Positions 1,874 to 18,838 are shown, numbered from the stretch's first letter. The stretch is DNA of 18,839 nucleotides from Prasinococcaceae sp. CCMP 1430 (GCA_013416795.1 RQSC01000028.1:27571-46409), one strand, 5' to 3'. Notes: a model not told the origin generated them from the letters alone. A program made the numbers and translations.

Positions 1874-3466
1874 CTACAGCTGCTGCTTGCTGTGCTTGAT
1901 GTCTAGGCTGGCGGACGTGAGCTCCGTGACGCTTGAGGTGGAAGATGCCTTGCTGCCCTTGCTGGAGCTCGCCTTTGCAGATCGCGCCTCGTCGGTGCTC
2001 TCATCCTCGTCGCTCTCGTCTGCGACGGATGAGGCCCATGCCTCTATTGCGAGCAGGAATTCGGGGAACGAGATCTCGCCGGAATTGTCTACATCCATCT
2101 CTGCCAGACGTGCCGCCACGACGTCGCCCAACAGGTCGCCGTTGTTCGCGGGAGCGCGTCCCTGTGGCGCGGCCGAAGCCGTGACGCGATCCAAAGATCC
2201 AGCACTGCGCTTCGCCTGCATGGACGTGGGCGTGGCGTGCCCCGCGAGCACGTGCGCGATCTCATCCTTGCTGACGAGGCCATCGTGATTCAAGTCAAAC
2301 GATATGAAGCACTCGAGAACGAGTTCCGAAGCCGCGTCGAATTCGGCCAAGTCGTCCGCGTGCACACGGCGCGCAGCCTGAGGTCTGGTGGGCTCGCGCA
2401 CCTCCTTTACGCGCAGCAGGCAAACGATGGCGACCATGACGACGAACTCCTCATACGTCAGCCGCTCGTGGTGCTCAGGGTCGATGTCCACTGCGTCAAA
2501 GAGCTCGTCCAGCGCAAGTCGGTCGGTCTTGCCCTGAGCGTCTGAGGAGTGCTTGGAGTCGCCCCCGACCTCTGAGTCATCGATGCTGCTCACGCTGTGC
2601 AGTTCGGACATGAGCTCCTGTGAGATGGTGACAAAGTACCTGCTCAGGTGTGTGCCCTTGGAAAAGGCCGGCGTGCCTGCGCGCGTGCCTCCGGCGCTCG
2701 TCAGCCCCGCAGCCTCCGCCGCGCGGCTCGCCCCGCGTTGGAAGAGGGCTACGGGGCCGACCCCCTCCGACTCGCTCGCGAGGTTCTCCAGCGCCTCGGA
2801 CGCTGCCGCGCCCTCGGTGGCCTGCGCCAGCCCAAAAGACACGAGCGCGGTGCAGAACTCGTCCTTCGAGAGCAGCCCGTCGCCATCCCTGTCAAGATCG
2901 TTGAAGACCACCCTGGCCTTGCCAAAGGTGCGCTGCAAGAGCGGAAAGCGCAGCGCCAGCCGATCTATAGACACGCCTGTCGGTTGGCGGCGCACGCGCG
3001 TTGTCACCGGCGACAGGTGCGTGCCGCCGAGCACGCCGCCACTAGCGGCGTCCGCGCTGCCACCAGCGCCCGCGTCCTCTCCCTCGCCACTTTTTTGGCC
3101 ACGCTGGCCGTCGGCGGCGGTCGCCTTGACGGCGTCCGCATACGAGATCCCCCCCGGCGTCGTCGGCGCAGGCGCGCCATTCTTAGCAGGGCTAGGAGCT
3201 GGCGTCGGCGCGAGGGACACCGACGCGGTGAGGGATGTCGACGCGCGCGCTTCCGCCTCCTCTACCGCCTTGCGCTTCTCGATGGCCTTCATGAGCTGAT
3301 GCAGGCGGAGCTGCACGGTGTCCATCCGCCGCATGGCGCCTCGCCTGCTGCGGTCGCTGGCCCGCGCCCCTCCTGCGCCGCCGAGCTGCTGCTGCGAGGA
3401 GGTGCGCACGTCCACGGCGCCAGCGCGCTCGAGGCTGCGGCGCATCAGGGACGCGCATCCGCCCAT
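1874..3466 (-). CDS. Calmodulin-like EF-hand protein, CML21/CML22-like, with predicted N-myristoylation/S-acylation (530 aa)
   Basis: First ATG at 3466 gives MGGCAS (Gly2, Cys4, Ser6). EF loops: DRDGDGLLSKDE, DIDPEHHERLTYEE (variant), DLNHDGLVSKDE, DVDNSGEISFPE. SIDRLALRFP, EFVVMVAIVCLL and EFLLAIEAW resemble plant CML21 (SFNSIVLKFP, EFIVLLCLVYLL, EFLFAFTQW). Confidence 0.85.
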   Translation of the reverse strand: MGGCASLMRRSLERAGAVDVRTSSQQQLGGAGGARASDRSRRGAMRRMDTVQLRLHQLMKAIEKRKAVEEAEARASTSLTASVSLAPTPAPSPAKNGAPAPTTPGGISYADAVKATAADGQRGQKSGEGEDAGAGGSADAASGGVLGGTHLSPVTTRVRRQPTGVSIDRLALRFPLLQRTFGKARVVFNDLDRDGDGLLSKDEFCTALVSFGLAQATEGAAASEALENLASESEGVGPVALFQRGASRAAEAAGLTSAGGTRAGTPAFSKGTHLSRYFVTISQELMSELHSVSSIDDSEVGGDSKHSSDAQGKTDRLALDELFDAVDIDPEHHERLTYEEFVVMVAIVCLLRVKEVREPTRPQAARRVHADDLAEFDAASELVLECFISFDLNHDGLVSKDEIAHVLAGHATPTSMQAKRSAGSLDRVTASAAPQGRAPANNGDLLGDVVAARLAEMDVDNSGEISFPEFLLAIEAWASSVADESDEDESTDEARSAKASSSKGSKASSTSSVTELTSASLDIKHSKQQL

Positions 3467-3856
3467 GCCGGCCACCGCCGCTCTTCTTTTTTGCCGGTCC
3501 CTGCTGCTGCACCTACCCCCCCCCCCCCTTCGTCGTCCGCCCGCACTACTTTGCTGCCCGCGTCAGCTGCCCGTCCTCCTCTTGACAACTGCCGCCTTCT
3601 TTTCCTGCCTCTCCTCCTCCGCCACGCCGCCACGCTGGCACGCCCGCAGCGCGCCGCGCCGCAAGATCTCCACAGATGCCAAAAGCGTGCCGCCGGCGGC
3701 CGCCCTCCCGCGCAGGCCACAGGCAGCACCCGGGGGGAAATTTCTCGCGCGCGCCGGGTTGGAGGCGCGGTGTGGCGCGGCGCGCGGGTGGGGTGTCGCG
3801 GCCCACTCCCGGGGGGGTGGCGCGCGTCACGGCACGTGCACCCAACACCCCCTCCG

Positions 3857-4514: not shown

Positions 4515-7500
4515 TGGCGGGCGCCAACGAGGCGCGCGTGCGCCCGTGGCTGGCCGTGCTGGCGCTGGCGGGCGCGGCGGGCGCGCTGTCGTGGGCGATG
4601 GTGAGCTTCATCGCCGTCATCCTCAACGCGCGCTTCGACCTCGCCGACGGCTACTTCGACGGGGGCAACGTGGCGGGGGGCGCCTTCGCCGCCGCGGGCA
4701 TCGCCGCGGCGCTCGTCCTACCCGCCGCGGCGGGCGTGGTGGCGCTGGCGCCGCTTGCGGGCGGCTCGGGCCTCCCCGAGATCGCTGTCTTCCTCAACGG
4801 CGCCACCGTCGAGGGAGCGCTCCACTTCCGCACGCTCGTCGTCAAGGTGCTCGGCATCTGCCTCGTCATCGCCGCCGGCGTGCCCGTCGGCCGCGAGGGC
4901 CCCATGGTGTTCGTCGGCGGGGGACTGGCGTGGCACATCGGCCGCGTGCTCATGCCGCTCTCCTTCCGGCGCAAGCAGTACGTCATCGAGGGCAGGTCAG
5001 AGCTCTCCAGGCTCGAGGAAGAGGAGAGGGCGGAAAAGGCCGACTTGCGCCCGGACCAGAAGGGCAGCAAAAGAAACGCGAAGGACGACATGCGGCCGAG
5101 CAACGAGCGGGAGCTCCAAGTCGAGGAGAGCAGCCTCGACTCGAACTCGAAGTTCAGCGGTCGCCTGCGGCACCGCCAGCCGCCCCCGCCGCCCTCGCCG
5201 CTGCCACCGGCGGCGCGCCGCGCGGACAAGCCTGAGGAGGGCCGGGACCGGCCGCCGCGCTGCGACGCGCTGCTGAGGCGCATGCCGACGACGACGGTGG
5301 TGCCCGCGGCCGTGTCCGACGGTGGCGTCACGCGCGTCTACGCGGACACCATCCAGATTCCGGAGGACGAGCGGCGGCTGGTGAGCTACGGCGGCGCCGC
5401 GGGCGTCGCCGCGGCATTCAACGCCCCGGTGGGCGGGGTGCTGTACATCATCGAAGAAATGAGCTCGTGGTGGGACAAGCCGATGACCTTTCGCGCCTTC
5501 GTGGGCTCCTCGCTGGCGGCCTTCGTGGTCGTGCTGCTGCTCACCGCCACGGAGGGGAGGGTGCCCGCGTCGGGCCTCACCATCTTCTCCACGCAGAGCA
5601 GGAACGCCGAACCCGAGTCCGACTGGCAGCTCAAGGACATCCCCTGGATCGTCATCCTGGGCGCGGCGGGCGGGGTCGTGTCGGCGGCCTTCAGCCACGC
5701 GGCCATCCTCATCACCGCGTGGCGCCGCCGCGCGCGCTGGCGACGCCGCGCGATCGTCAAGGTCGTCGAGGCGGTGCTGCACTGCGCGGTGGTCGTGCTC
5801 CTCATCAACGTAATACCGCTCGCAGGGCAGTGCCGGGAGGTCGTGCACACGGACGTGCACGACCACCACCGCCAGTTCGTGCAGTACACGTGCGAGCCGG
5901 TGGTCGGCGCGGACGGCAAGCCGCACGAGGCCTACAACGACCTCGCCACGCTGTACCTCAAGGGAGAGGAGGGCGCCATCCGGCAGCTCTTCGCTCGCGA
6001 TTCGACCGAGACCATCTTCTCGCCCGGAACGCTCGTCATCTTCTTCTTCACGTACCTCGCACTCAGCGTGAGCGTGTTCGGCCTGCCGATTCCCATGGGG
6101 CACTTCGTCCCGATGCTGCTCTCAGGGGCCGCGCTCGGGCGCCTGATGGGACAGGGCGTGCAAGCAATATACGGCAGCGGCGACTACGGCGATCAGCACT
6201 CGCCCGGCGCGTACGCCGAAATTGGCGCCGCCGCGTTCCTGGGCGGCTTCACGCGCATGTCCATCGCCATCACGGTGCTGCTTGTCGAGGCGACGCGCGA
6301 TGTCAGCGTATTGCTGCCTCAAACGCTGGCCATCATCGTAGCGCGGTTGTGTGCATGGCTGGTCCTGCGCAAGTCGTTCAACGAGGTCGTGCTGGACCTC
6401 AAGAAGGTCGGCTTCCTCCACGAAAAGCCCGAGCCCGCAATGCGCAATCAGCGTGCCTCGGACGTCATGGCGCGCGTTGCTCGCGGTGGCAATGGGGGCA
6501 CGGTGCACGTGCTGGCGTCGACCATGCGCGTCACCGCGCTGCGGAGAGTGCTCAGGCTCGCGCCTAGGCAAGTGGTGTTCCCAGTCGTGAAGGCGATCGC
6601 CACCGACCACCCGGATGCGCGAGCTGGGCGCGGTGCTCGCGGGCTTTCGGAGCAGCAACACCAACAGCACGCGCACGGTGGCCTCGTCGGCATTGTGTAC
6701 AGAAGCCGCGTGCTGCGCCGCCTGAACGAGACGGTGGTGCAGCTGCGAGATGAAGGCCTCGCGAGTGACGACATCCGCCGCGCCAACGTCAACCTCGCCG
6801 CCGATGTGGACCATGCCCCGTACGTGGTTTCCGTTCGCGCACCGTTGCATCGGGTGCAGCGCTTGCATCGTCGCCTCCGCCTGCAGCATGTGGTGGTGGT
6901 CAACACCGACGGGAGCCCCGCAGGCATTATTGGGCGCAAGCAGCTCCTTGAGGGGGAGAAGAGGAAGGTATTTCATCGGAGCGTCGACGCCGCCGTGGCG
7001 GGGGCGGCTGTCGTGCACGACGCGACCAACTTGAACGGGAACGAGAATGGGCCTCCTCGGGCCGACCCCCATCACGCAGTTCCCACTACGGACCGCACTT
7101 CCAGCAAGGCGCAGTTGCTTATGATCCAGGAATCCGACGAAGATGAGCGGCCAAAGGAGGTCGCCAAGACCGAAAAAGCGACGCCATTGTTCCCCCGCGC
7201 GCATGCTGCGCACGCGGGCGGTGCTGTGCTTTCGCTCGCGCAGGCTGCGCCCGCAGCTGGCGCCCATGCCGCTGCGGCCGCGTCTGCAGCCGTGGCGGCT
7301 GCAGGGGAGGCGGTAGTCCTCGACATGCGCCAGGCAGTACGCGACGCTCGCGCTGCGGCCGTGCCGCCAGGCGCAAACGGCGTGGCCGCGGCGGACGCAG
7401 CGCTGGTGACGGACGCGCTGCGGGAGGCATCTCACTTTGATGATATGCACTGCGCGTCTGACGCCGAGGAAGACGCTGAGGATGTGGTCGTAGACGAGTC

Positions 7501-8383
7501 GGAGATGCTTCTCTACTCCTTGAGTTCGGATCGTGGTTTGCGCACCGAATCGAGCTCGGGCTCCGCACTTGTCCCAAGGCGTTTCAGCATGCCGTCAGTG
7601 AGTTCACCCGGCCTGCAGGCTCTGGCAGAGGCCGGCGCCGGCAGTACGCCAGTGCGACGGGTGCCGTCTGTGCTGCACACTGAAAAGATTGGCGCTCTCG
7701 AGCTGGGCGAGCTGGACGCCTCAGGGTCTGGCTCAGAACAGAACACCATCCTCGCCCAGCGGGAGGCAGAGAACAGGCGACTTCCGCTGGCGCAGCTCTT
7801 CCGTGCGGCGTCGATGGCGGCGCTCGATCGAAAGGGCAAAGCGAAGGCGCCTACGGAAGAAGAAGAGCTCAGCAAGCTCGAGGAATGGTCCACCGACGAT
7901 GAGACGGACACCGAGTCGGCCGCCTCGCAACGTAGCACGTCGTCCGGGGTGATCACTAGCGCCACCGAAGTCGAACCTGCGAACAACTCGCGCGACGAGA
8001 GTGGTGATTCGGATGCCGTCACTTTCCACCAACCTGCAGATCGCGCGACGACCCCCGCAGCACCAGTGTCCACCGACGCCAATGATGGTGACACGCATGG
8101 TGACCCCGCACCCACGGCAACGGAGGGCGAGCTCACGCGAGCGACAAGCGCAGAAGCGCGCGAACAGGCAGCACGGAACGAGCCCCTCGCGCCAGCAGTA
8201 GACACAAGGTGGCTTGGCGAGTCAGCGCTCGCGCAGGATGAGCTCCCACCAGAACAAGCCATCAATGTGCCCCGGGGGGCAACGGAGGGGACTGAGATCG
8301 CACGAGCAGCAGCGAGCGACGACGCGCGCGCACATGCGATCGAAAGTGCGACCAGCGACGACGGGGGGCGTCCTCGTTCGTGA
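4515..8383 (+). CDS. CLC-family anion channel/transporter with CBS domains and a long disordered C-tail; 5'-partial
   Basis: GSGLPE (4763-4780), GREGPM (from 4889), GAAGVAAAFNAPVGGVLYIIEEM, PMGHFVP and YAEIGAAAFLGGFTRM motifs. CBS-like segments: ASDVM...VFPVV...LVGIV and QHVVVVNTDGSPAGIIGRKQL. Confidence 0.93.
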
Positions 8384-8611: not shown

Positions 8612-8690
8612 GATCCGCCTCTTTCGTGCTCTCTTGCGCCGCGCGCCTCGCGGTTGCGCCGCCCGCCGCCCGCGTGGGTGCGCGCGGGGC

Positions 8691-11380
8691 TCATGGGCCC
8701 CAGCCGAGGGCGGCCATGGCGCCGGCGACGCGCTGCATGGGGCGCAGCAGGTGGCCATAGCCTAGCGGCCACGACGACTCCGTAAAGACGGAGGCGACGA
8801 CGCCGTCGACGACGATGGTGCCCTCGCGCGTGTGGAAGTTGTACGCGTCGCGCTCGACGGTGGCCGACACGCCGACGACGCGCGCGGCCACTGCTGCGGC
8901 GCCGGCGCCGTCCGCGGCCTCGAAGACGCAGTCGCCGGCCGCGACGTCGCGCGCGGCAACGAGCTCGTGCGCGGCGAAGGCGCCGGCGGCGCCCGCGCAG
9001 CCGCGGTCGACGGGTACGAAGTGCGCCGGCGACAGGCGCAGCGTGGCACCCGAGCTGAGCGACAGCACGGCGAAGCGCGACGGCCTGTCCGTGATGCGGT
9101 GGGTAAAGCCGTAGTTGTCGCCGAGGCGCACGTCCACGATGGGGCTGTACGCGAGCGTGCCGTCCGCCGTCGCGCTGAGCACGCGGTCGCCGACCTTGAG
9201 CTCCCTGAGCGCCACGGGCGACGGCACGCCCTCGACGCGGGCGACGGCGTCGCCAGGGAAGCAACTGATGTCCTGAAAAAAAAAGCATTCACCTGGGTAG
9301 TCATTATCTAACTCGCACCCCCTTCCCATCAATACTTTGTTGCCGTTGCTGTCGAGTACCCAATGCCCAAATCCTTCTATGTCCCAGCCAGAAGAGCCAA
9401 ATGGGAGCCAACGGGTAGGTATTATGGCGAAATCCGAATTCGGGTCCCCCATTTCCCACCACTCCTCTGCCATGGCCCCAAGGTCGTAATAGTACTCGCA
9501 CTCTTGCGGAGTGCGCAAGTGGCAAGGGGTGTGCCAAAGCTCCGCGCTCATGCCGTCCCAAATCCCCTGGTTGAACGTCATCTTGCACATGATCTTATCC
9601 TCAGTCTCTCCTTGTAACCTACCCAAACCCCTATAGCACATTGTGTTTTGGTCGAACTTGCTGGAGCCCCCGCCGAAGCACATGCACGCGTCATTCGTCC
9701 GCTCTTCGCAGTCCTGGTCGAACACCTCGCGGGTGCACACCGACGCATCAGTCTGAAATACTGTCGTTTGTGGTGGATTGTTGTCGTAATCATTTAACAC
9801 GTCGTAGTGCCCATTTGAAACATTGAACTCCCATGTTGTCCCGTCGTTGCTCAGGCTCAGTGGAGCCCGGTACTGCGACAGAAGGTGCCGCCGCCTGTCC
9901 ACCTCTTCCGGGGTCTGCACGAGGTAGATGCCGCACTCGCCGGGGCGAGTTTCGTCGTTGGGGCAGTTCAGCAGGTAGTTCTTTCCTTCGTTCCCGCCCA
10001 CAGTGTTGGCTTGGCCGGTGCCCTCGAGGCTTTCGCACCGCATCGAGGAGATGGAGAGCGTGTTCTGCACACCGCCCTTGGTGGTGAACGGAATGTCGAG
10101 GACGCTGCCAAGCGTCTTGACAGTCTGGCACGTCGTCTTGATATACGCCTCTTGGAGGACAGCGACCAGCACCTCCGAGGGCCCCTGCTCTGACAGGATG
10201 CGGCGCGTGGTGTGGTGCAGCTTGGTGCGGTCCACGCGCGCCAGAGGGTGCTCGTCGAGCAGTCTGCGGTGCCCCCCGACGTCGTTGACGCGCTCGAGCG
10301 GCGCGTCGAGGAGGACCGCGCCATCCCGTGCGGGATCGAGGCTGAGGCTGCCCGACTTCTGCGCCTCGGTGCTGCCCTTGACGGTCGTCACGCCATCGGC
10401 CGAGACTGTCGTCTCCTTTGAGAGCTCGACGACGGCGAAGACGAGCCCCGTGATCGCCGCGAGCATGACGCCCATGAGCAGGAGGAGCGCAACCGAGAGC
10501 CTGGTGAGCTTCTTGACCGTCTTCTTGGACTCGATGTACAGCTCGGCGCCACGCGCGAGCTCCATCGGCGCCACGGTGCCGTCGCCGTCCACGTCAAACA
10601 CCTTGAGCGTGGGCTGGATCGCCTTGGGGAGCGTGGCGATGGAGATCTCGCCGTTCTTGTTGGCCTCCTTCAAGGCGGCGTACATCTCCACCATCTCGGC
10701 GATCTCGTCTATCTCCAGCACGCCGTCGCCCTCGTCATCCAGCGCGCGCACGGTGGCGCGCAGACGCTCGGGGAACATGTCGACCGTGAGGTTGCCCCTG
10801 CGCGCCTCCTCGATCGTGCGCGCCGCGTGCTCCAGCTCGCCGAGGTCGATCATGCCGTCGCCGTTACGGTCGAAGGCGCTCAGATACTTCCTGGCCTCGT
10901 GCGGAAACTTGGAGACGGGCACGCCGACGAAGTCCTCCGTGGAGTCCTTGAACATCGGCGTGCCCTTGCGCCCATCGCTGCCTGCGGTGCGCGGCTCTGG
11001 CGACACGCGGCCTGTGGTGGCGCGGCGCGCGCCGCGCCGCGGTCAGCGCCCTCACCGGCGGCGCGCGTGGGAACCCCAACCGAACCCAACCGAACCGAAC
11101 CAAACCTAACCGACGCCGCGCCTCGGCGGCCTCCACACGCTGGAAGAGAGGGGGGGCGCGCGGCGGCGCGCGCCCCCGCGAGCGAGCGGGCGTCGCGCCC
11201 GCCCTGTGGCGCGCGCGACCGCCGCAGGCGGGGGAACCGCAGCCGAGCTACGAGCGCGCCGTAGCCGCGCGCGCGCAGCGCGATACCGGGTCAAACCGCA
11301 CCAACGGGAGATGAGACCGGGGATGACCTCCTCTGACCGGGGAACGAAGGCGGGGTCGCCCGGGTGCGCGCGACGGACAT
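8691..11380 (-). CDS. EF-hand / single-TM / Cys-rich / Hedgehog-type Hint (Hog) domain protein; complement(join(8691..11011,11302..11380)), ~799 aa
   Basis: Three EF-loop repeats: DRNGDGMIDLGE, DDEGDGVLEIDE, DVDGDGTVAPME. Hydrophobic helix LSVALLLLMGVMLAAITGLVFAVV (~10499-10428). C-terminal CFPGDA...LKVGDRVL...LRLSPAHFV...ARDVAAGDCV...YNFHTREGTIVVDGVVAS matches the Hog-Hint pattern. Exon 1 (ACCATG, MSVARTRATPPSFPGQRRSSPVSSPV-G) joins in frame across a phase-1 intron. Confidence 0.85.
8694..9263 (-). other. Hog module: Hint autoprocessing domain plus short SRR-like tail
   Basis: Cys1 at 9263-9261 (S/CFPG). Block-B SPAH. GTIVVDGVVAS terminal motif. The GHLLRPMQR tail resembles the first helix of the sterol-recognition region. 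Confidence 0.88.
11012..11301 (-). other. Spliceosomal intron (290 nt) of the Hog gene
   Basis: G|GTGCGG donor, GCTGAC branch near 11042-11047, CACAG| acceptor. Phase is consistent with both exons. Confidence 0.7.
11071..11112. repeat. Degenerate pentamer repeat (CCGAA/CCCAA/CCTAA) inside the intron
   Basis: gaaccccaaccgaacccaaccgaaccgaaccaaacctaaccg. Confidence 0.7.
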
Positions 11381-11807: not shown

Positions 11808-14494
11808 TCACGAGTAGCCGCGCGGCAGGACGAAGACGGCGGCGGTCGCGGGATCGACCGTGGGCCCTTGCTCGGTCATCCACGTCGAGGCGGCGGTGCT
11901 CGGGTCGACCGACGCTGCCTGGATCTCGTGGAGGGCAACGGGCAGACCCGCGGTGGCGTTGAAGAGCCAGTCGGAGCCGTCGTGGTAGCTCGCGCGCTTC
12001 GTGGTGCCATTGAATATCACGACGATGGCGCCGAGGGCCGCGTCGAGCTGCGCGAGCTTCGGGTCGGCGCCATCGGCGCCGCCGTCGCGCAGCACCATGA
12101 CCACCATGCCAGGGGGGGCGTCGGGCGCGAAGAGCACGCGCTCCTGAATATCGGCAGCGCTGCGCAGCCGAAAGAGGGGGCTCGAGTTGCGCACTCGCAG
12201 CATCTCCCGAAAGGCCTCGGCCGTGCGGGCGATGAGCTCGTGCGAGGGCGAGATCTCGTCCGCGGCGACGAGCAGAGGACGCATGAGGTCATACTTCTCG
12301 CCGTTCTTCGGAGCGGGAGGGAGGCCGACGCCGTAGTTGTTGTCGCGCATCTCCCAGTCGAGGCGATTGAAGTGGTCGCCGCTGCGGTACGAGTCGCGGT
12401 CGAGGCTCTTGGAGCGCAGGATGTCATCACCTGCGTGGAAGAAGGGCACGCCCTGCGCGTACGCGACCGTCGACGACGCAAAGAGCGAGTGCCTCGCGAG
12501 CTCCTCCGCACCGCACCCGGCGCCGCGGAGCTTCCACACGCACATGTCAAAGAGCGTCTCGTTGTCGTGGGCACTGACGTAGTTGACCGTCTCCCGCGGC
12601 TCGCCCGCATACCCGCCCCAGCCGGCGGCGTCCCGCCCGAGCACGCGCCGCGCGGGACCCAGCGCACCGCCCTCGATCCACGTCGGTGCGTCGAACTCGA
12701 ACTCGGCCAGGTTGCCAGCGAGGGCGCACTGCAGCCGCTCGGCGCTATCGCGCATGATGCGCAGGCGCTCGGCGTCGTCCATCTCGAATCCATTAGGCGC
12801 GTCGAGCACCGCGGTCGCGAAACCCTGCACGCGAGGGTCGCCGAACGGCGAACCGCCGACCACGGCCTCGCGCAAGCGGTCGTTGAAAGAGCCAACGCCA
12901 GTGCCGGCGAGGTTGCTCTGGCTCGCGTTCACACCAAGCCTCCCGTTGGCCACCTCGCCAAAATCCCACCCCTCGCCGTACAGGTACACGGCCGAGCCGT
13001 CAATGCCGTCGCGCTCGAGCGTGAGCGCGTCCAGCGCCGCGCGCGTACGCTGAATGGTCGACAGCATCATGTGGCCCATCAGGTCGAAGCGGAAGCCCGC
13101 CACGCGGTACTGGCGAACCCAGTGCACCACCGAGTCGACGACAAGCCTTTCGAACATGTAGTGCTCCGAGGCGGTGTTGTTCATGCACGTGCTCGCCTCG
13201 ATGTGGCCGTCCATGTTGCGGCGTTGGTAGTAGCCGGGCACGACCTTGTCGAGGACCGATTTGGGGCAGTGCGGCCCGCTCGAGCACGTGTGGTTGTAGA
13301 CGACATCGAGCACGGTGCCAAGGCCGTCGTCGGCGAGCGCTTCGACCAGCTCGCGCAACTCGCGCACGCGCGCGGGGCCATCGGGATCGCTCGCATAGCT
13401 GCCCTCGGGCGCGGAGTAGTGGTGAGGGTCGTATCCCCAGTTGTAGGGCGCCCTGTCGGCGGCCTCGACCACGGCCTGCTGCTGCGCGTCCGAGTCGGGG
13501 GACAGCTCGCGCAGGGAGCCGACGCCGGGCGGCGGCCGCGCCGTCGCCCACTCGTGCTTGCGCTCGTTCACGCTGCCGTAGTCGGGGACGGGCAGAAGAT
13601 GGATGTGCGTCATGCCGGCGCGTGCGAGCTCGCGGAGGTGCGCGCGCCCCCTCGAGTGCTCGCACGCGAAGGCCCGGTACCCGCCGCGCAGCTCAGGCTC
13701 CACGGTCATGTCGCTCGCGCTGAAGTCGCGCACGTGCAGCTCGTAGATGGCGAAGTCGGTAGGCTCGCGGGGCGTCACCTGCCCGCGCGCCGCCCAGCGC
13801 GCGTTGAACGCTTGCGCACCGCCCTCGCCAGGGAAGCACGCGGCATCGGCGCCGATATCGACGAGGTGCGTGCGCGCGCCGTCGGCGCTCAGACCGTGCG
13901 AGTACGGGTCGGACGCCACGCTCACCTCGACGTAGTCGGTCCACGGGCAGTACACGGTCACCTCGTAGACGTAGTAGCCGCGCCCGATGAGATCGGCCGG
14001 CACGGCACCCTGCGGGGTTGTCCACTCGCCGCGAGGTCCGCGCGCCATCTCGATCTCGAGCGCCGGGCCGGCGTGCGGGTCAGGCGTGTCGAACACGATC
14101 GCGCGCACGCGCTGCGCGGTGGGCGCCCACACGGCGAGCGACGCCTCGCCGTGGCTGACGGTACACCCGAGCGGCCCGTCGTACGCGCACGCGTCATCGA
14201 GCGCGCCCGCTTGCTGCACGGCGAAAGCACGCGCCTGATCGTCCTCGCCGCCCTCGCCGCCTACGGCCACGCCCAGCTGGCACGCGAACAGCTCGGCGAG
14301 CTCCTCGTCCGACGGCGGCGGCTCGAGCGTGAAGGCCGCGTAGTCGGCATACGCGGGGAACTTCCGCGCCGCCTCGGGGTCGGCCTGGGCGAGCGTCGCG
14401 CGCCCGTCCGCGCGCCGCAGCTGGATGCGCCACGCGCCGCACGCGCCGGCGCCGAGGTCATTGCCGGCGTCGTCCCACGCCAGGCGCGCCTCGC
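11808..14494 (-). CDS. PU1: Pullulanase / limit dextrinase (GH13 alpha-1,6-glucosidase, starch debranching); 5' end in the gap
   Basis: VWAPTA, DPYS, IYELHVRDFS, YNWGYDP, DVVYNH, GFRFDLMGH (nucleophile Asp), LYGEGWD (acid/base Glu), YVSAHDNETLFD and RSKSLDRDSY...DHFNRLD motifs. Confidence 0.95.
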
Positions 14495-14574
14495 NNNNNN
14501 NNNNNNNNNNNNNNNNNNNNNNNNNNNNNNNNNNNNNNNNNNNNNNNNNNNNNNNNNNNNNNNNNNNNNNNNNN
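14495..14574. other. Assembly gap flanked by poly-C (14575-14594)
   Basis: N run. Confidence 0.95.
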
Positions 14575-14663
14575 CCCCCCCCCCCCCCCCCCCCACTGCT
14601 CCGCCCCTGCACCACCCCGCCGCCCCGCGCGAATCTCCCGGGAGCCGCTTTCCCGCCAACGCG

Positions 14664-16625: not shown

Positions 16626-17374
16626 GCGCGGCGCTCGCTCGCGCGCGCTGAGCTCGAGTCGGCGGGCGAGCTCGCGCGCGCCGGCAAGATCAGGGCGGTG
16701 CGGTCGGCGGAGGCGGCCGAGCTGGCGGCCAAGAGCGGCTACGTGCATCTGGACATCCGCCCGGACTACGAGCGCGAGCGCGGCTACGTGGCCGGCTCGG
16801 TCCACGTGCCGCTCTTCGTCGAGGACCTCAGCGAGGACCCGATCAGCCTCATGAAAAAGGCGGTGACCTTCGGCTACGGAGGCTGGTGGATGGGCAACCG
16901 CCTCACGCGGCGCAACCCGGCCTTCCTCGAGGCCGTGGAGACAGAGGTGCTCCCGCGCATTGCAGACGAGGATGGCGGTGACGCGCCGGGCGTCATCGTG
17001 GCGTGCGGGGAGGGACTGCGCTCGCTGCTGGCCGCGGAGGTGCTGTACAACGATGGGCGATTCGGGGAGGTGCGTCACCCGGAGCGCTCACCCCAGCGCC
17101 ACTCGCACGCGCGACGAGCGCGCGAGCTGCCGAGATGGCCGCGCGTTCTCGGCCCGCGCACGCGCAGGCAAATCGGCGCGCGCAAGCTCACTGACTCATG
17201 CGGATGCGCGCGCGCGCGCGCACGCTGGCGGCACGCGGGCAGGTGTGCTGGATCCCGCAAGGATACCAGTCGGACGTGAGCGACGCCCTGGAGTCGGCGA
17301 CGGACACGCCAATGCAGGATGCAGGCAGCGGTGCCGTCAGCGGCTTCGTCACGAAGCTTCTCAAGCAGAAGTAA
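16626..17374 (+). CDS. Single-domain rhodanese-like protein, plant STR10-like; 5'-partial; join(<16626..17069,17243..17374)
   Basis: GKIRAV...LDIRP...GSVHVPLFVED...PISLMKK...GYGGWWMG...VIVACGEGLRSL closely follows Arabidopsis STR10 (active-site loop CGEGLRS). Exon 2 supplies VCWIPQGY...GAVS, equivalent to the LGWLTGGF motif region. Confidence 0.85.
17070..17242 (+). other. Spliceosomal intron (173 nt)
   Basis: GAG|GTGCGT donor, CTGAC at 17191, (GC)n, GCAG|GTG acceptor; phase 0. Confidence 0.8.
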
Positions 17375-17917: not shown

Positions 17918-18838
17918 TCAAGCTGCGGCCACGGCCTCCACAAGCTCATTGCCAACGATGTCGACGTCGGCCTCATCGTCGAAGGCATCAACGACCTCGA
18001 CTGCGTCGTCGTGGGCGTTAGCGCCGACGGGCGCGGGGCCGTCGTGCGCCTCGAGGATGTCCACCTTGACGATGAGGGTGTCGTCCACCAGGAAGCCATA
18101 GCGCGGATCGTTGACCTGTTGCAGCGACACGAACATGGTAAACCCCCAGTCGGGCTCGCGCGTGTTGAACTCGTGATGGGTCGATTTTTCGACAGTCGTG
18201 TCGGGGTCGCGCTGGTTGACGACGGCGAGCGTGAAGCGCGCGTAGCGACACCAGCTCGGAACGAGCTCCGCCGCGTCGGCCACGTCAAGGTACAGGCTCA
18301 GCCACTCGACGCGGTTGCCACGCGGGAAGAGGAGCAGGCGCCACGGGTGGCCGTGCACCGCGCGCGTGTCGCTGTACACCTTGCGCTCGGCCAGCTTCGA
18401 GAAGTTCGGGATGCGCCACCAGATGCTGCTCGTGCCGTGCGCATTCGCGAAGTGCAGCGTGTGCTTCCAGCTGCCCAGGCGGAGCACCTGCTTGTCCTTG
18501 TCCTGCTGGTGCCTGTCCTCGACGACGCGGCGGGCGGCCTCCTCGCAGAGCGTCATCTCCGCGGGGGGCACGGGCGACGAGGTCCCGCTGCCACTGCCGC
18601 CCGCGCTCGCCCTCGGCATGACCATGTGCTTCTCGGTCGCGAGGGGCGAGGTGAGCGCCAAGTGCGCGTGCGGGTGCGCGTGCGCCTTCTTGCCGCCCGC
18701 CTGACCGCCTCCCATGGTGCGCTGCGCCGCGGGCGTCCCGGGAGCCGTGCCAGACATGCTGCTGTTGCGCCTCTGCAGCGGCGAGCCGGGCGCCCGCGCG
18801 GCGCCGCCGACGCCGCCAACGCCGCCGACGGCGCCGCC
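17918..18838 (-). CDS. MATH/TRAF-domain protein with the domain near the C-terminus; probably 5'-partial
   Basis: WRIPNFSKL...YSD...GHPWRLLLFPRGN...LSLYLDV...FTLAVVNQ...HEFNTREPDWGF..FV...GFLVDDTLIV is a MATH domain resembling that of UBP12/13. The frame stays open upstream of ATG 18757 to the window edge. Confidence 0.88.
   Translation of the reverse strand, partial: GGAVGGVGGVGGAARAPGSPLQRRNSSMSGTAPGTPAAQRTMGGGQAGGKKAHAHPHAHLALTSPLATEKHMVMPRASAGGSGSGTSSPVPPAEMTLCEEAARRVVEDRHQQDKDKQVLRLGSWKHTLHFANAHGTSSIWWRIPNFSKLAERKVYSDTRAVHGHPWRLLLFPRGNRVEWLSLYLDVADAAELVPSWCRYARFTLAVVNQRDPDTTVEKSTHHEFNTREPDWGFTMFVSLQQVNDPRYGFLVDDTLIVKVDILEAHDGPAPVGANAHDDAVEVVDAFDDEADVDIVGNELVEAVAAA

Follow-up and report, generated by a model that had tools for sequence, protein, structure and literature searches.

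A candidate two-cut membrane precursor with an EF-hand anchor, a Cys-rich cargo and a Hog-type Hint domain in Prasinoderma coloniale and other algae

Introduction

In the present study, we analysed a window of 18,839 nucleotides from Prasinococcaceae sp. CCMP 1430 (GCA_013416795.1 RQSC01000028.1:27571-46409), whose minus strand carries the Prasinoderma coloniale gene PRCOL_00002424 at 8691-11011. We consider it reasonably probable that its product is a two-cut membrane precursor, held by a type II anchor, from which a cargo would be cut at its N-terminus by an S1P-type protease and at its C-terminus by a Hog-type Hint domain. The layout was found in at least 12 other sequences, among them those of a glaucophyte and of a further green-algal lineage, making 13 members with the window protein. 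On sequence evidence, this is a widespread algal family without prior description.

The original prediction, made from the DNA alone, had placed three EF-hand repeats, one transmembrane (TM) helix behind the basic stretch KKTVKKLTR and a C-terminal Hog domain starting S|CFPG in a single reading frame, and had called the architecture unlike that of characterised proteins. These points were borne out. At 8691-11006 (-) one frame is free of stops over 771 codons, whereas the other two contain 16 and 13 stops. The EF-hands were recognised by Pfam and by canonical 12-residue loops that start at residues 46, 90 and 138, the TM helix occupies residues 170-193 (peak hydropathy 2.67; its topology is predicted), and the Hog domain begins at Cys582. 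In a literature search with most subscription journals outside its coverage, no published description of the EF-hand/TM-Hog layout was found, and the domain-architecture search that had been proposed recovered the same order of parts in 13 sequences. Residues are numbered here from the GTG at 11006; numbers in the true protein are these plus 8. The features on which the argument depends are as follows.

10836..10871 (-), EF-hand loop 1, residues 46-57 (Pfam EF-hand_1, E 3e-10; canonical loop)
10704..10739 (-), EF-hand loop 2, residues 90-101, with Glu at position 3 (Pfam, loop pattern)
10560..10595 (-), EF-hand loop 3, residues 138-149, the most conserved (near-invariant in 50 homologues)
10428..10526 (-), basic patch (161-169) and single TM helix (170-193) (hydropathy)
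10257..10268 (-), RRLL site 1, residues 247-250 (sequence; motif enrichment)
10194..10205 (-), RRIL site, residues 268-271, the same four residues as the S1P site of RALF23 (sequence; PMC13082318)
9906..10178 (-), conserved 4-Cys alpha/beta prodomain, residues 277-367 (hidden Markov model, HMM)
9879..9890 (-), RHLL site, residues 373-376, with RR before it; predicted N-terminal cargo cut (motif position in the family)
9264..9878 (-), predicted mature cargo, residues 377-581 (205 aa, 23.4 kDa, pI 4.2, 10 Cys, 8 Trp)
9264..9650 (-), hypervariable cargo half, residues 453-581, with two deeply divergent alleles (nonsynonymous to synonymous rate ratio, dN/dS, versus L014; alignment)
8784..9263 (-), Hog-type Hint, residues 582-741 (Pfam; alignment to 6TYY and 1AT0; residue table)
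9261-9263 (-), Cys582, equivalent to Cys1 (alignment)
9099-9101 (-), His636, at the position of Hedgehog D46 (alignment)
9021-9032 (-), S659-x-x-H662 (alignment)
8787-8789 (-), Val740, at the position of Hedgehog C143 (alignment)
8694..8783 (-), short adduct-recognition tail, residues 742-771 (one amphipathic helix, HLLRPMQR, like helix 1 of the sterol recognition region, SRR)

Results

Residues 578-743 matched the Pfam Hint model PF01079 with 81.8 bits (cut-off 29.7; E 6.8e-23), and 11/11 family members scored above the cut-off. The junction S|CFPG falls at Cys582, and the best solved relatives are the Drosophila Hedgehog Hint chains 6TYY and 1AT0 (E 4e-8). At a mean identity of 23%, Cys1, the His46-equivalent and His72 are invariant in the family and position 69 is Ser or Thr in 13/13 members. 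By analogy with Hedgehog, self-cleavage at Ser581-Cys582 is likely. In Hedgehog itself, D46H is an active variant with wider sterol tolerance (PMC9163320; PMC12054796). His46 as a speciality of the family was rejected, as it was found in 24/26 other algal and protist Hogs.

Sterol or cholesterol ligation by this Hog is doubtful from its sequence, because Cys143 and the second SRR helix are missing. Position 143 is Val740 here and Cys in 1/13 members, and this Cys is required in Hedgehog (PMC12054796). The single helix of the tail has a hydrophobic moment of 0.72; the second SRR helix and the HWY motif are absent from the 31 residues after position 143. SHH without SRR helix 2 still cleaves and does not ligate cholesterol, both helices being needed (PMC7242414). 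The valine and the 31-residue tail, together with a frameshift that removes the Hog in one environmental contig (L003), would also suit an inactive or vestigial Hint, the protein then being simply a surface protein processed at its RRLL sites, with a Hint-fold module at its end. We regard this as distinctly improbable: the Hog hardly varies from allele to allele (dN 0.002-0.007) with C1, H46 and SxxH kept, a residue other than Cys at 143 is the rule in non-animal Hogs (PMC2362128), and 12 intact alleles stand against 3 broken contigs.

A single origin of the Hints of the family was rejected by the approximately unbiased test (p 0.0004; some comparison rows were fragments), and the prodomain is common to the family although its Hints form no single clade. 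The Hint of PRCOL_00002424 groups with moderate support with two short-tailed signal-peptide proteins, P0038 and P0082. These two have the same short SWPxGxG tail as PRCOL_00002424 and, judged by eye, a signal peptide with NHL-like repeats or an algal iron-uptake-like domain. From such sequences, Hog modules seem to have been swapped between secreted proteins, and the Hog looks like a transferable tag that secreted proteins of algae carry.

The luminal part contains three RRLL-type sites that the first reading had overlooked. In the luminal parts of the 13 members there are 27 such motifs, against 1.8 +/- 1.4 in 1000 shuffles (maximum 7), and one lies 7-49 residues after the prodomain in 12/13 members. 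The pattern RRxL/RxLx is the SBT6.1/S1P cleavage site in RALF23 and CLEL6 (PMC13082318), and S1P-type SBT7 is present throughout Archaeplastida (PMC6713707). The HMM of the prodomain matched 29 fetched proteins, all of them from the EF-hand/TM-Hog family. Its structure model (predicted local distance difference test score, pLDDT, 63) gave no clear fold match (best VIA Z 4.5, Foldseek E at least 0.03, Atlas TM below 0.5), which does not establish a new fold. Two Cys-containing luminal segments had been proposed; both are present, but they differ in kind, one being this conserved prodomain and the other the hypervariable cargo.

Near the N-terminus, Pfam EF-hand models scored above their cut-offs, and KKTVKKLTR stands directly ahead of the TM helix. 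The positive-inside rule, the luminal Cys, the sequons and the RRLL sites predict a type II signal anchor with a cytosolic N-terminus. In a structure model of the EF-hand/TM part (pLDDT 88; predicted template modelling score, pTM, 0.49), three repeats were seen and the exit helix of EF3 was continuous with the TM helix over 50 residues at pLDDT >90. Against calmodulin, the monomer model reached a TM-score of at most 0.18 at that pTM of 0.49, and its packing, as modelled, does not resemble that of calmodulin; structure matches were limited to generic long helices and weak calmodulin matches. XopAW and lanmodulin matches were rejected; they lie far under the cut-off and reflect the EF-hands only. 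Canonical EF loops occur in 12/13 family members, nine of which have a single loop, and pairing of EF-hands between chains is a reasonable inference from the model.

The family was found by a search of 1.84 billion representatives followed by profile scans, in which 135 fetched proteins had the EF-hand/TM anchor, 42 had a Hint and 12 had both. Of these 12, ten are further 50%-identity clusters, alongside the protein of the window and the EukProt model of it; two more sequences, P0178 and P0179, joined at a later stage. Among the sources are Pterosperma sp. CCMP1384 and the glaucophyte Cyanophora paradoxa; the other sequences come from metagenome or transcriptome contigs, some of which have neighbours of plastid type. 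The common order is one to three EF-hands, the TM helix, a KET/KDT motif, a 90-residue 4-Cys domain, an RRLL-type site, the cargo, and x|CFP with the Hog. Measured from the last motif to Cys1, the cargo is 15-615 residues long with 2-20 Cys and is unrelated among members; this segment is Cys-rich in every member and the least conserved among distant pairs. We also observed that P0081, P0128, P0162, P0083 and P0019 have a last cargo of 15-37 residues (30 aa with 8 Cys in P0081), and that P0128 and P0162, from the same samples, are alike at 76% over the anchor and at 9% over the cargo.

RRLL motifs are also present in 53/70 Hint-less anchor proteins (9.6 expected), which carry leucine-rich repeat (LRR), other or very large cargo, and look-alike anchor clusters occur in diatoms and haptophytes. 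The EF-hand/TM part is best read as a generic anchor, probably serving oligomerisation or sorting rather than acting as a switch for the Hint in particular. As side observations, the anchor forms a large algal family without a Pfam model, and P0005, P0006, P0053/P0188 and P0076 are Prasinoderma paralogues or relatives of it with RRLL sites and cargo of up to ~3000 aa.

The cargo of PRCOL_00002424 is acidic (net charge -22), and its GC content at third codon positions is 0.66, against 0.94 in the anchor and Hog; as a family trait this is weak, the value being lower in 4/6 other loci. No relatives outside the species were found in Pfam, NCBIfam, ESM Atlas, IMG/VR, phage records or JGI metagenomes, nor among the top 150 matches in the 1.84-billion-representative search. 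With no IMG/VR or phage match, there is no support for deriving the low-GC stretch from a virus. A second allele (P0205) was found in 11 ocean contigs at the same locus, beside the same CLC gene, which shows few differences over 3.9 kb, and both ocean metatranscriptomes examined carry it. It departs from the reference mainly at 9200-10000, and nearly all of the differences lie in the cargo. Over residues 453-581, dN is 0.34 and dS 0.25 versus L014, whereas anchor, prodomain and Hog differ between alleles by dN 0.002-0.007 and dS 0.015-0.026; all ten cargo Cys are kept. Two near-reference alleles have 6 and 7 replacements in residues 453-581, with 0 and 1 silent changes. Positive selection on the cargo is suggested by these sequences, not significantly, and the pattern speaks for an interaction surface where either a balanced polymorphism has long persisted or cassettes have been exchanged.

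Transcription of PRCOL_00002424 was seen as metatranscriptome RNA contigs, and these, with a Tara scaffold (L019), define the following gene parts.

8691..11011 (-), exon 2, with all domains (open reading frame, RNA contig ends, EukProt model, L019 splice sites)
11013-11012 (-), exon 2 acceptor AG (RNA contigs end at 11013)
11192..11194 (-), assembly gap, lacking ~85 nt and the true exon 1 of 19 coding nt, MSRERQ (DNA run X1, L019)

The original prediction had put exon 1 at 11380 in a 799-aa model, which the RNA contigs and L019 replace with another exon 1. RNA contigs X16/15 and X17/20 depart from the window at 11013, and the loose end of X16 codes for MSRERQ, the N-terminus of the EukProt model. 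This exon was searched for across the window and is absent. At 11193, a single letter of the window corresponds to 86 letters in run X1. Scaffold L019, which covers the pullulanase gene, PRCOL_00002424 and the CLC neighbour, contains the MSRERQ exon, followed by a GT donor and an intron of 207 nt. Since L019 and the RNA hold an exon 1 that the window lacks, the full protein is ~779 aa. Because exon 1 and ~85 nt are missing at 11193, upstream annotation from the window is unreliable. The sequence missing there is a GC-rich repeat.

The fusion of neighbouring genes, a misassembly or a low-GC stretch that is really an intron was weighed as the cause of the layout. GC falls from ~0.70 to 0.54, there is an acceptor-like T9-CAG site at 9273-9284, and in the EukProt model a weak GC donor is used to splice out 9428-9273, an in-frame stretch of 156 nt. 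On the other side, the low-GC stretch is free of stops in one frame only, and the layout is common to independent scaffolds and other species. Within the supposed intron, divergent alleles retain the Cys and a block of 13 residues. One RNA contig from the second allele (X17/17), unspliced over 9020-10040 from the Hint into the prodomain, reads through this supposed intron; the 156-nt stretch is therefore probably coding, RNA read-through being known from the second allele only. Misassembly, named beforehand together with separate genes as what would refute the architecture, is excluded because one DNA contig in each of two runs bridges 8612-10515 and 12 intact environmental copies exist, the whole gene being intact on Tara scaffolds. 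The artefact is thus largely refuted, and we leave it a very small chance.

In L003, eight T replace nine and the resulting frameshift loses the Hog; the change is either a sequencing error or slippage. The nine-T run (minus strand, 9276-9284) lies directly before the Hint and is not found in the second allele. Near EF3 and the TM helix, the frame is shifted in L001 by a 22-nt deletion between 10-nt direct repeats (window 10550-10571) and in L002 by a 1-nt deletion (window 10522); both are probably assembly errors at the overlap of paralogous contigs. Pseudogenisation in the wild, considered from the frameshift in each of these three contigs, was dropped because 12 intact contigs turned up.

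Among the neighbouring genes, a long single-exon open reading frame (ORF) at 4538-8383 (+) has motifs that suggest a CLC chloride channel bearing CBS domains and an extended acidic tail; it is convergent with PRCOL_00002424 and hardly differs between the two alleles of the cargo. A pullulanase/limit-dextrinase-like ORF (11808-14615, -), upstream of PRCOL_00002424 and on its strand, is broken by an assembly gap. Other ORFs are one with several EF-hand-like loops of another type and no TM seen (1874-3475, -), a MATH-domain-like ORF (17918-18757, -) and a rhodanese-like ORF (~16650-17080, +).

Discussion

The mechanism that we favour would begin with insertion of the protein into the endoplasmic reticulum (ER) by its TM helix, leaving the EF-hands cytosolic and the remainder luminal. 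The luminal Hog would then fold, Cys582 would undergo the N-S shift and the thioester at Ser581 would be resolved, removing a Hog of 19.5 kDa. From Hedgehog chemistry, His636 would activate the nucleophile, either water or an alcohol of the membrane, for instance a sterol. Cleavage by the Hint would by itself detach only the Hog, with the cargo still anchored, and the RRLL sites are needed to set the cargo free. A Golgi SKI-1/S1P-type subtilase may cut after them and remove the anchor with the 4-Cys prodomain, which is probably a folding chaperone or mask. The product would be a disulfide-rich extracellular protein, of 205 aa here, free or held at the surface by a C-terminal lipid. A role of the cargo in recognition between organisms (defence, virus or grazer binding, self/non-self signalling) is suggested because the allelic divergence is deep and restricted to the cargo.

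Several points weigh against this proposal. The gene, its domains, the family, the motif enrichment, the conserved catalytic residues and the allelic pattern are seen in the sequences; topology, both cleavages, any lipid and the role of the cargo are our inferences. The type II topology is a prediction, Val740 replaces a residue that Hedgehog requires, and the tail has no SRR helix 2. The RRLL pattern was picked after the sequences were seen, and the presence of S1P was taken from Archaeplastida at large. The dN/dS of the cargo, ~1.4, is not significantly above the flanks (Fisher p 0.06, two haplotypes), and therefore relaxed constraint or old gene conversion also fits. Within the P0081 cluster, variability of the cargo does not exceed that of the anchor.

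A membrane-anchored, autoprocessed precursor that couples cytosolic Ca2+ to display or release had been the core of the original prediction. The precursor is supported by Cys1, the His46-equivalent and S/TxxH, invariant family-wide, and by one order of parts in 13 sequences; for the coupling no support was found. Control of the Hint by Ca2+ is unsupported because the same EF-hand/TM anchor also heads more than 100 Hint-less proteins with unrelated cargo (12 of 135 have a Hint), and most members have a single EF-hand. A triggered form of display or release, in which binding of Ca2+ to the EF-hands alters the oligomer state or the register of the EF3-TM helix and thereby permits transport, shedding or access by S1P, is to our mind unlikely. 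It would draw on the canonical loops kept in 12/13 members, the exit helix of the last EF-hand running on into the TM helix, and repeats that in the model do not look calmodulin-packed (TM-score at most 0.18 at pTM 0.49), so that single-EF members would pair between chains. Nevertheless, ~390 residues separate the anchor from the Hint, the chain would be broken after RRLL cleavage, and Hedgehog autoprocessing in the ER needs no trigger (PMC9163320).

To a similar, low degree we allow for a surface or wall protein, whose pieces stay together or whose Hint thioester cross-links the cargo to wall polysaccharide or protein. The cargos of 15-37 residues in several relatives are more like peptide ligands, and an interaction surface would explain the localised divergence between alleles more readily than a structural role would. 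Such a wall role is nonetheless consistent with the RXL sites that mark diatom wall proteins (PMC5647440), the RRLL motifs of 53/70 Hint-less anchor proteins with LRR or very large cargo, the acidic cargo (net charge -22), and the proposal that non-Hedgehog Hog proteins build extracellular matrix (PMC13353863). The two-cut precursor and its rivals are not mutually exclusive. Combining its strongest forms, one could speculate on an ancient Archaeplastida family of sterol-linked, disulfide-rich peptide signals, built outside animals with Hedgehog-type chemistry, with an N-terminus made by S1P, a phytosterol added by the Hog at the C-terminus, release gated on a Ca2+ signal by a cytosolic EF-hand oligomer, and a cargo that is a polymorphic recognition cassette kept by balancing selection; the full combination seems still less likely to us than either Ca2+ gating or a wall role.

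Questions about the role of non-animal Hogs, and about lipid attachment to a partner by any of them, date back to 2008. The EF-hand/TM-Hog family predicts both ends of a mature product, and with cargos of 15-37 residues in some members the mass of the product and its adduct would therefore be directly readable by mass spectrometry. It naturally holds the His46 base that was engineered into Hedgehog, without the reportedly essential Cys143, and so tests the generality of the mechanism. If the processing is true, algae join plant-style S1P maturation and Hedgehog-style autoprocessing in one precursor, and the Prasinoderma locus is an ocean-wide two-allele polymorphism confined to the displayed cargo.

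Comparison with known systems

By its sequence, PRCOL_00002424 is a member of the non-Hedgehog Hog proteins, not a Hedgehog, an intein or a Vint protein (PMC2362128; PMC13353863). PF01079 is above its cut-off, C582, S659 and H662 are present, the N-terminal region is unrelated to Hedge, and secretory routing would be by a predicted signal anchor with no signal peptide. Like those proteins, it has a C-terminal Hog-type Hint behind a variable Cys-containing extracellular region, and the Cys of motif J is replaced, as in the Hogs of protists, algae and mosses. Most of the proteins described there carry a single N-terminal domain behind a cleavable signal peptide, whereas the present family has a cytosolic EF-hand part with a type II anchor (both predicted), a prodomain of its own and RRLL sites delimiting the cargo. 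The term 'EF-hand' is absent from Burglin 2008 (PMC2362128), and non-animal Hog proteins, including the Hog genes of Cyanidiophyceae, are still described as 'of unknown function' in a paper of 2026 (PMC13353863).

With metazoan Hedgehog, the protein shares the Hint sequence, Cys1, His72, the first amphipathic helix after the Hint and, presumably, the ability to cut itself off an upstream cargo. It differs in having His for Asp46, Ser for Thr69 and Val for Cys143, in lacking the second SRR helix and HWY, and in a TM anchor that replaces the signal peptide. It also lacks the Hedge (HhN) domain, and outside the Hint and EF-hands there was no Pfam or Protein Data Bank match. Inteins, with host protein on both sides and a C-terminal His-Asn junction, and Vint proteins, with a VWA domain upstream, do not match: the Hint here ends 30 residues before the stop and no VWA or intein-splicing match was found. 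The EF-hand part resembles calmodulin-like sensors in its three canonical 12-residue loops.

The algal EF-hand/TM proteins PRCOL_00006802, 00005538 and 00004389 share the EF repeats, the TM helix, KET/KDT and luminal RRLL; such proteins are also present in Pycnococcus, Pseudoscourfieldia and Crustomastix, with Atlas clusters in chlorophytes, diatoms and haptophytes. They are without the 4-Cys prodomain and the Hog, and are known from database annotations alone. The RXL-processed wall proteins of diatoms (silaffins, silacidins, SAPs) have RXL proteolytic motifs in extracellular precursors, but no Hint, EF-hand/TM anchor or Cys-rich cargo. In the plant S1P precursors RALF23, CLEL6/GLV1 and PROSCOOP12, RRxL/RxLx likewise stands directly before a mature, often Cys-rich and fast-evolving peptide. 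These are small, secreted by a signal peptide and without Hint, EF-hand or TM anchor; there is no sequence similarity to them, the cargo having no Pfam match and hence none to RALF or SCOOP. Overall, by analogy, the protein would work like a RALF precursor at one end of its cargo and like Hedgehog at the other.

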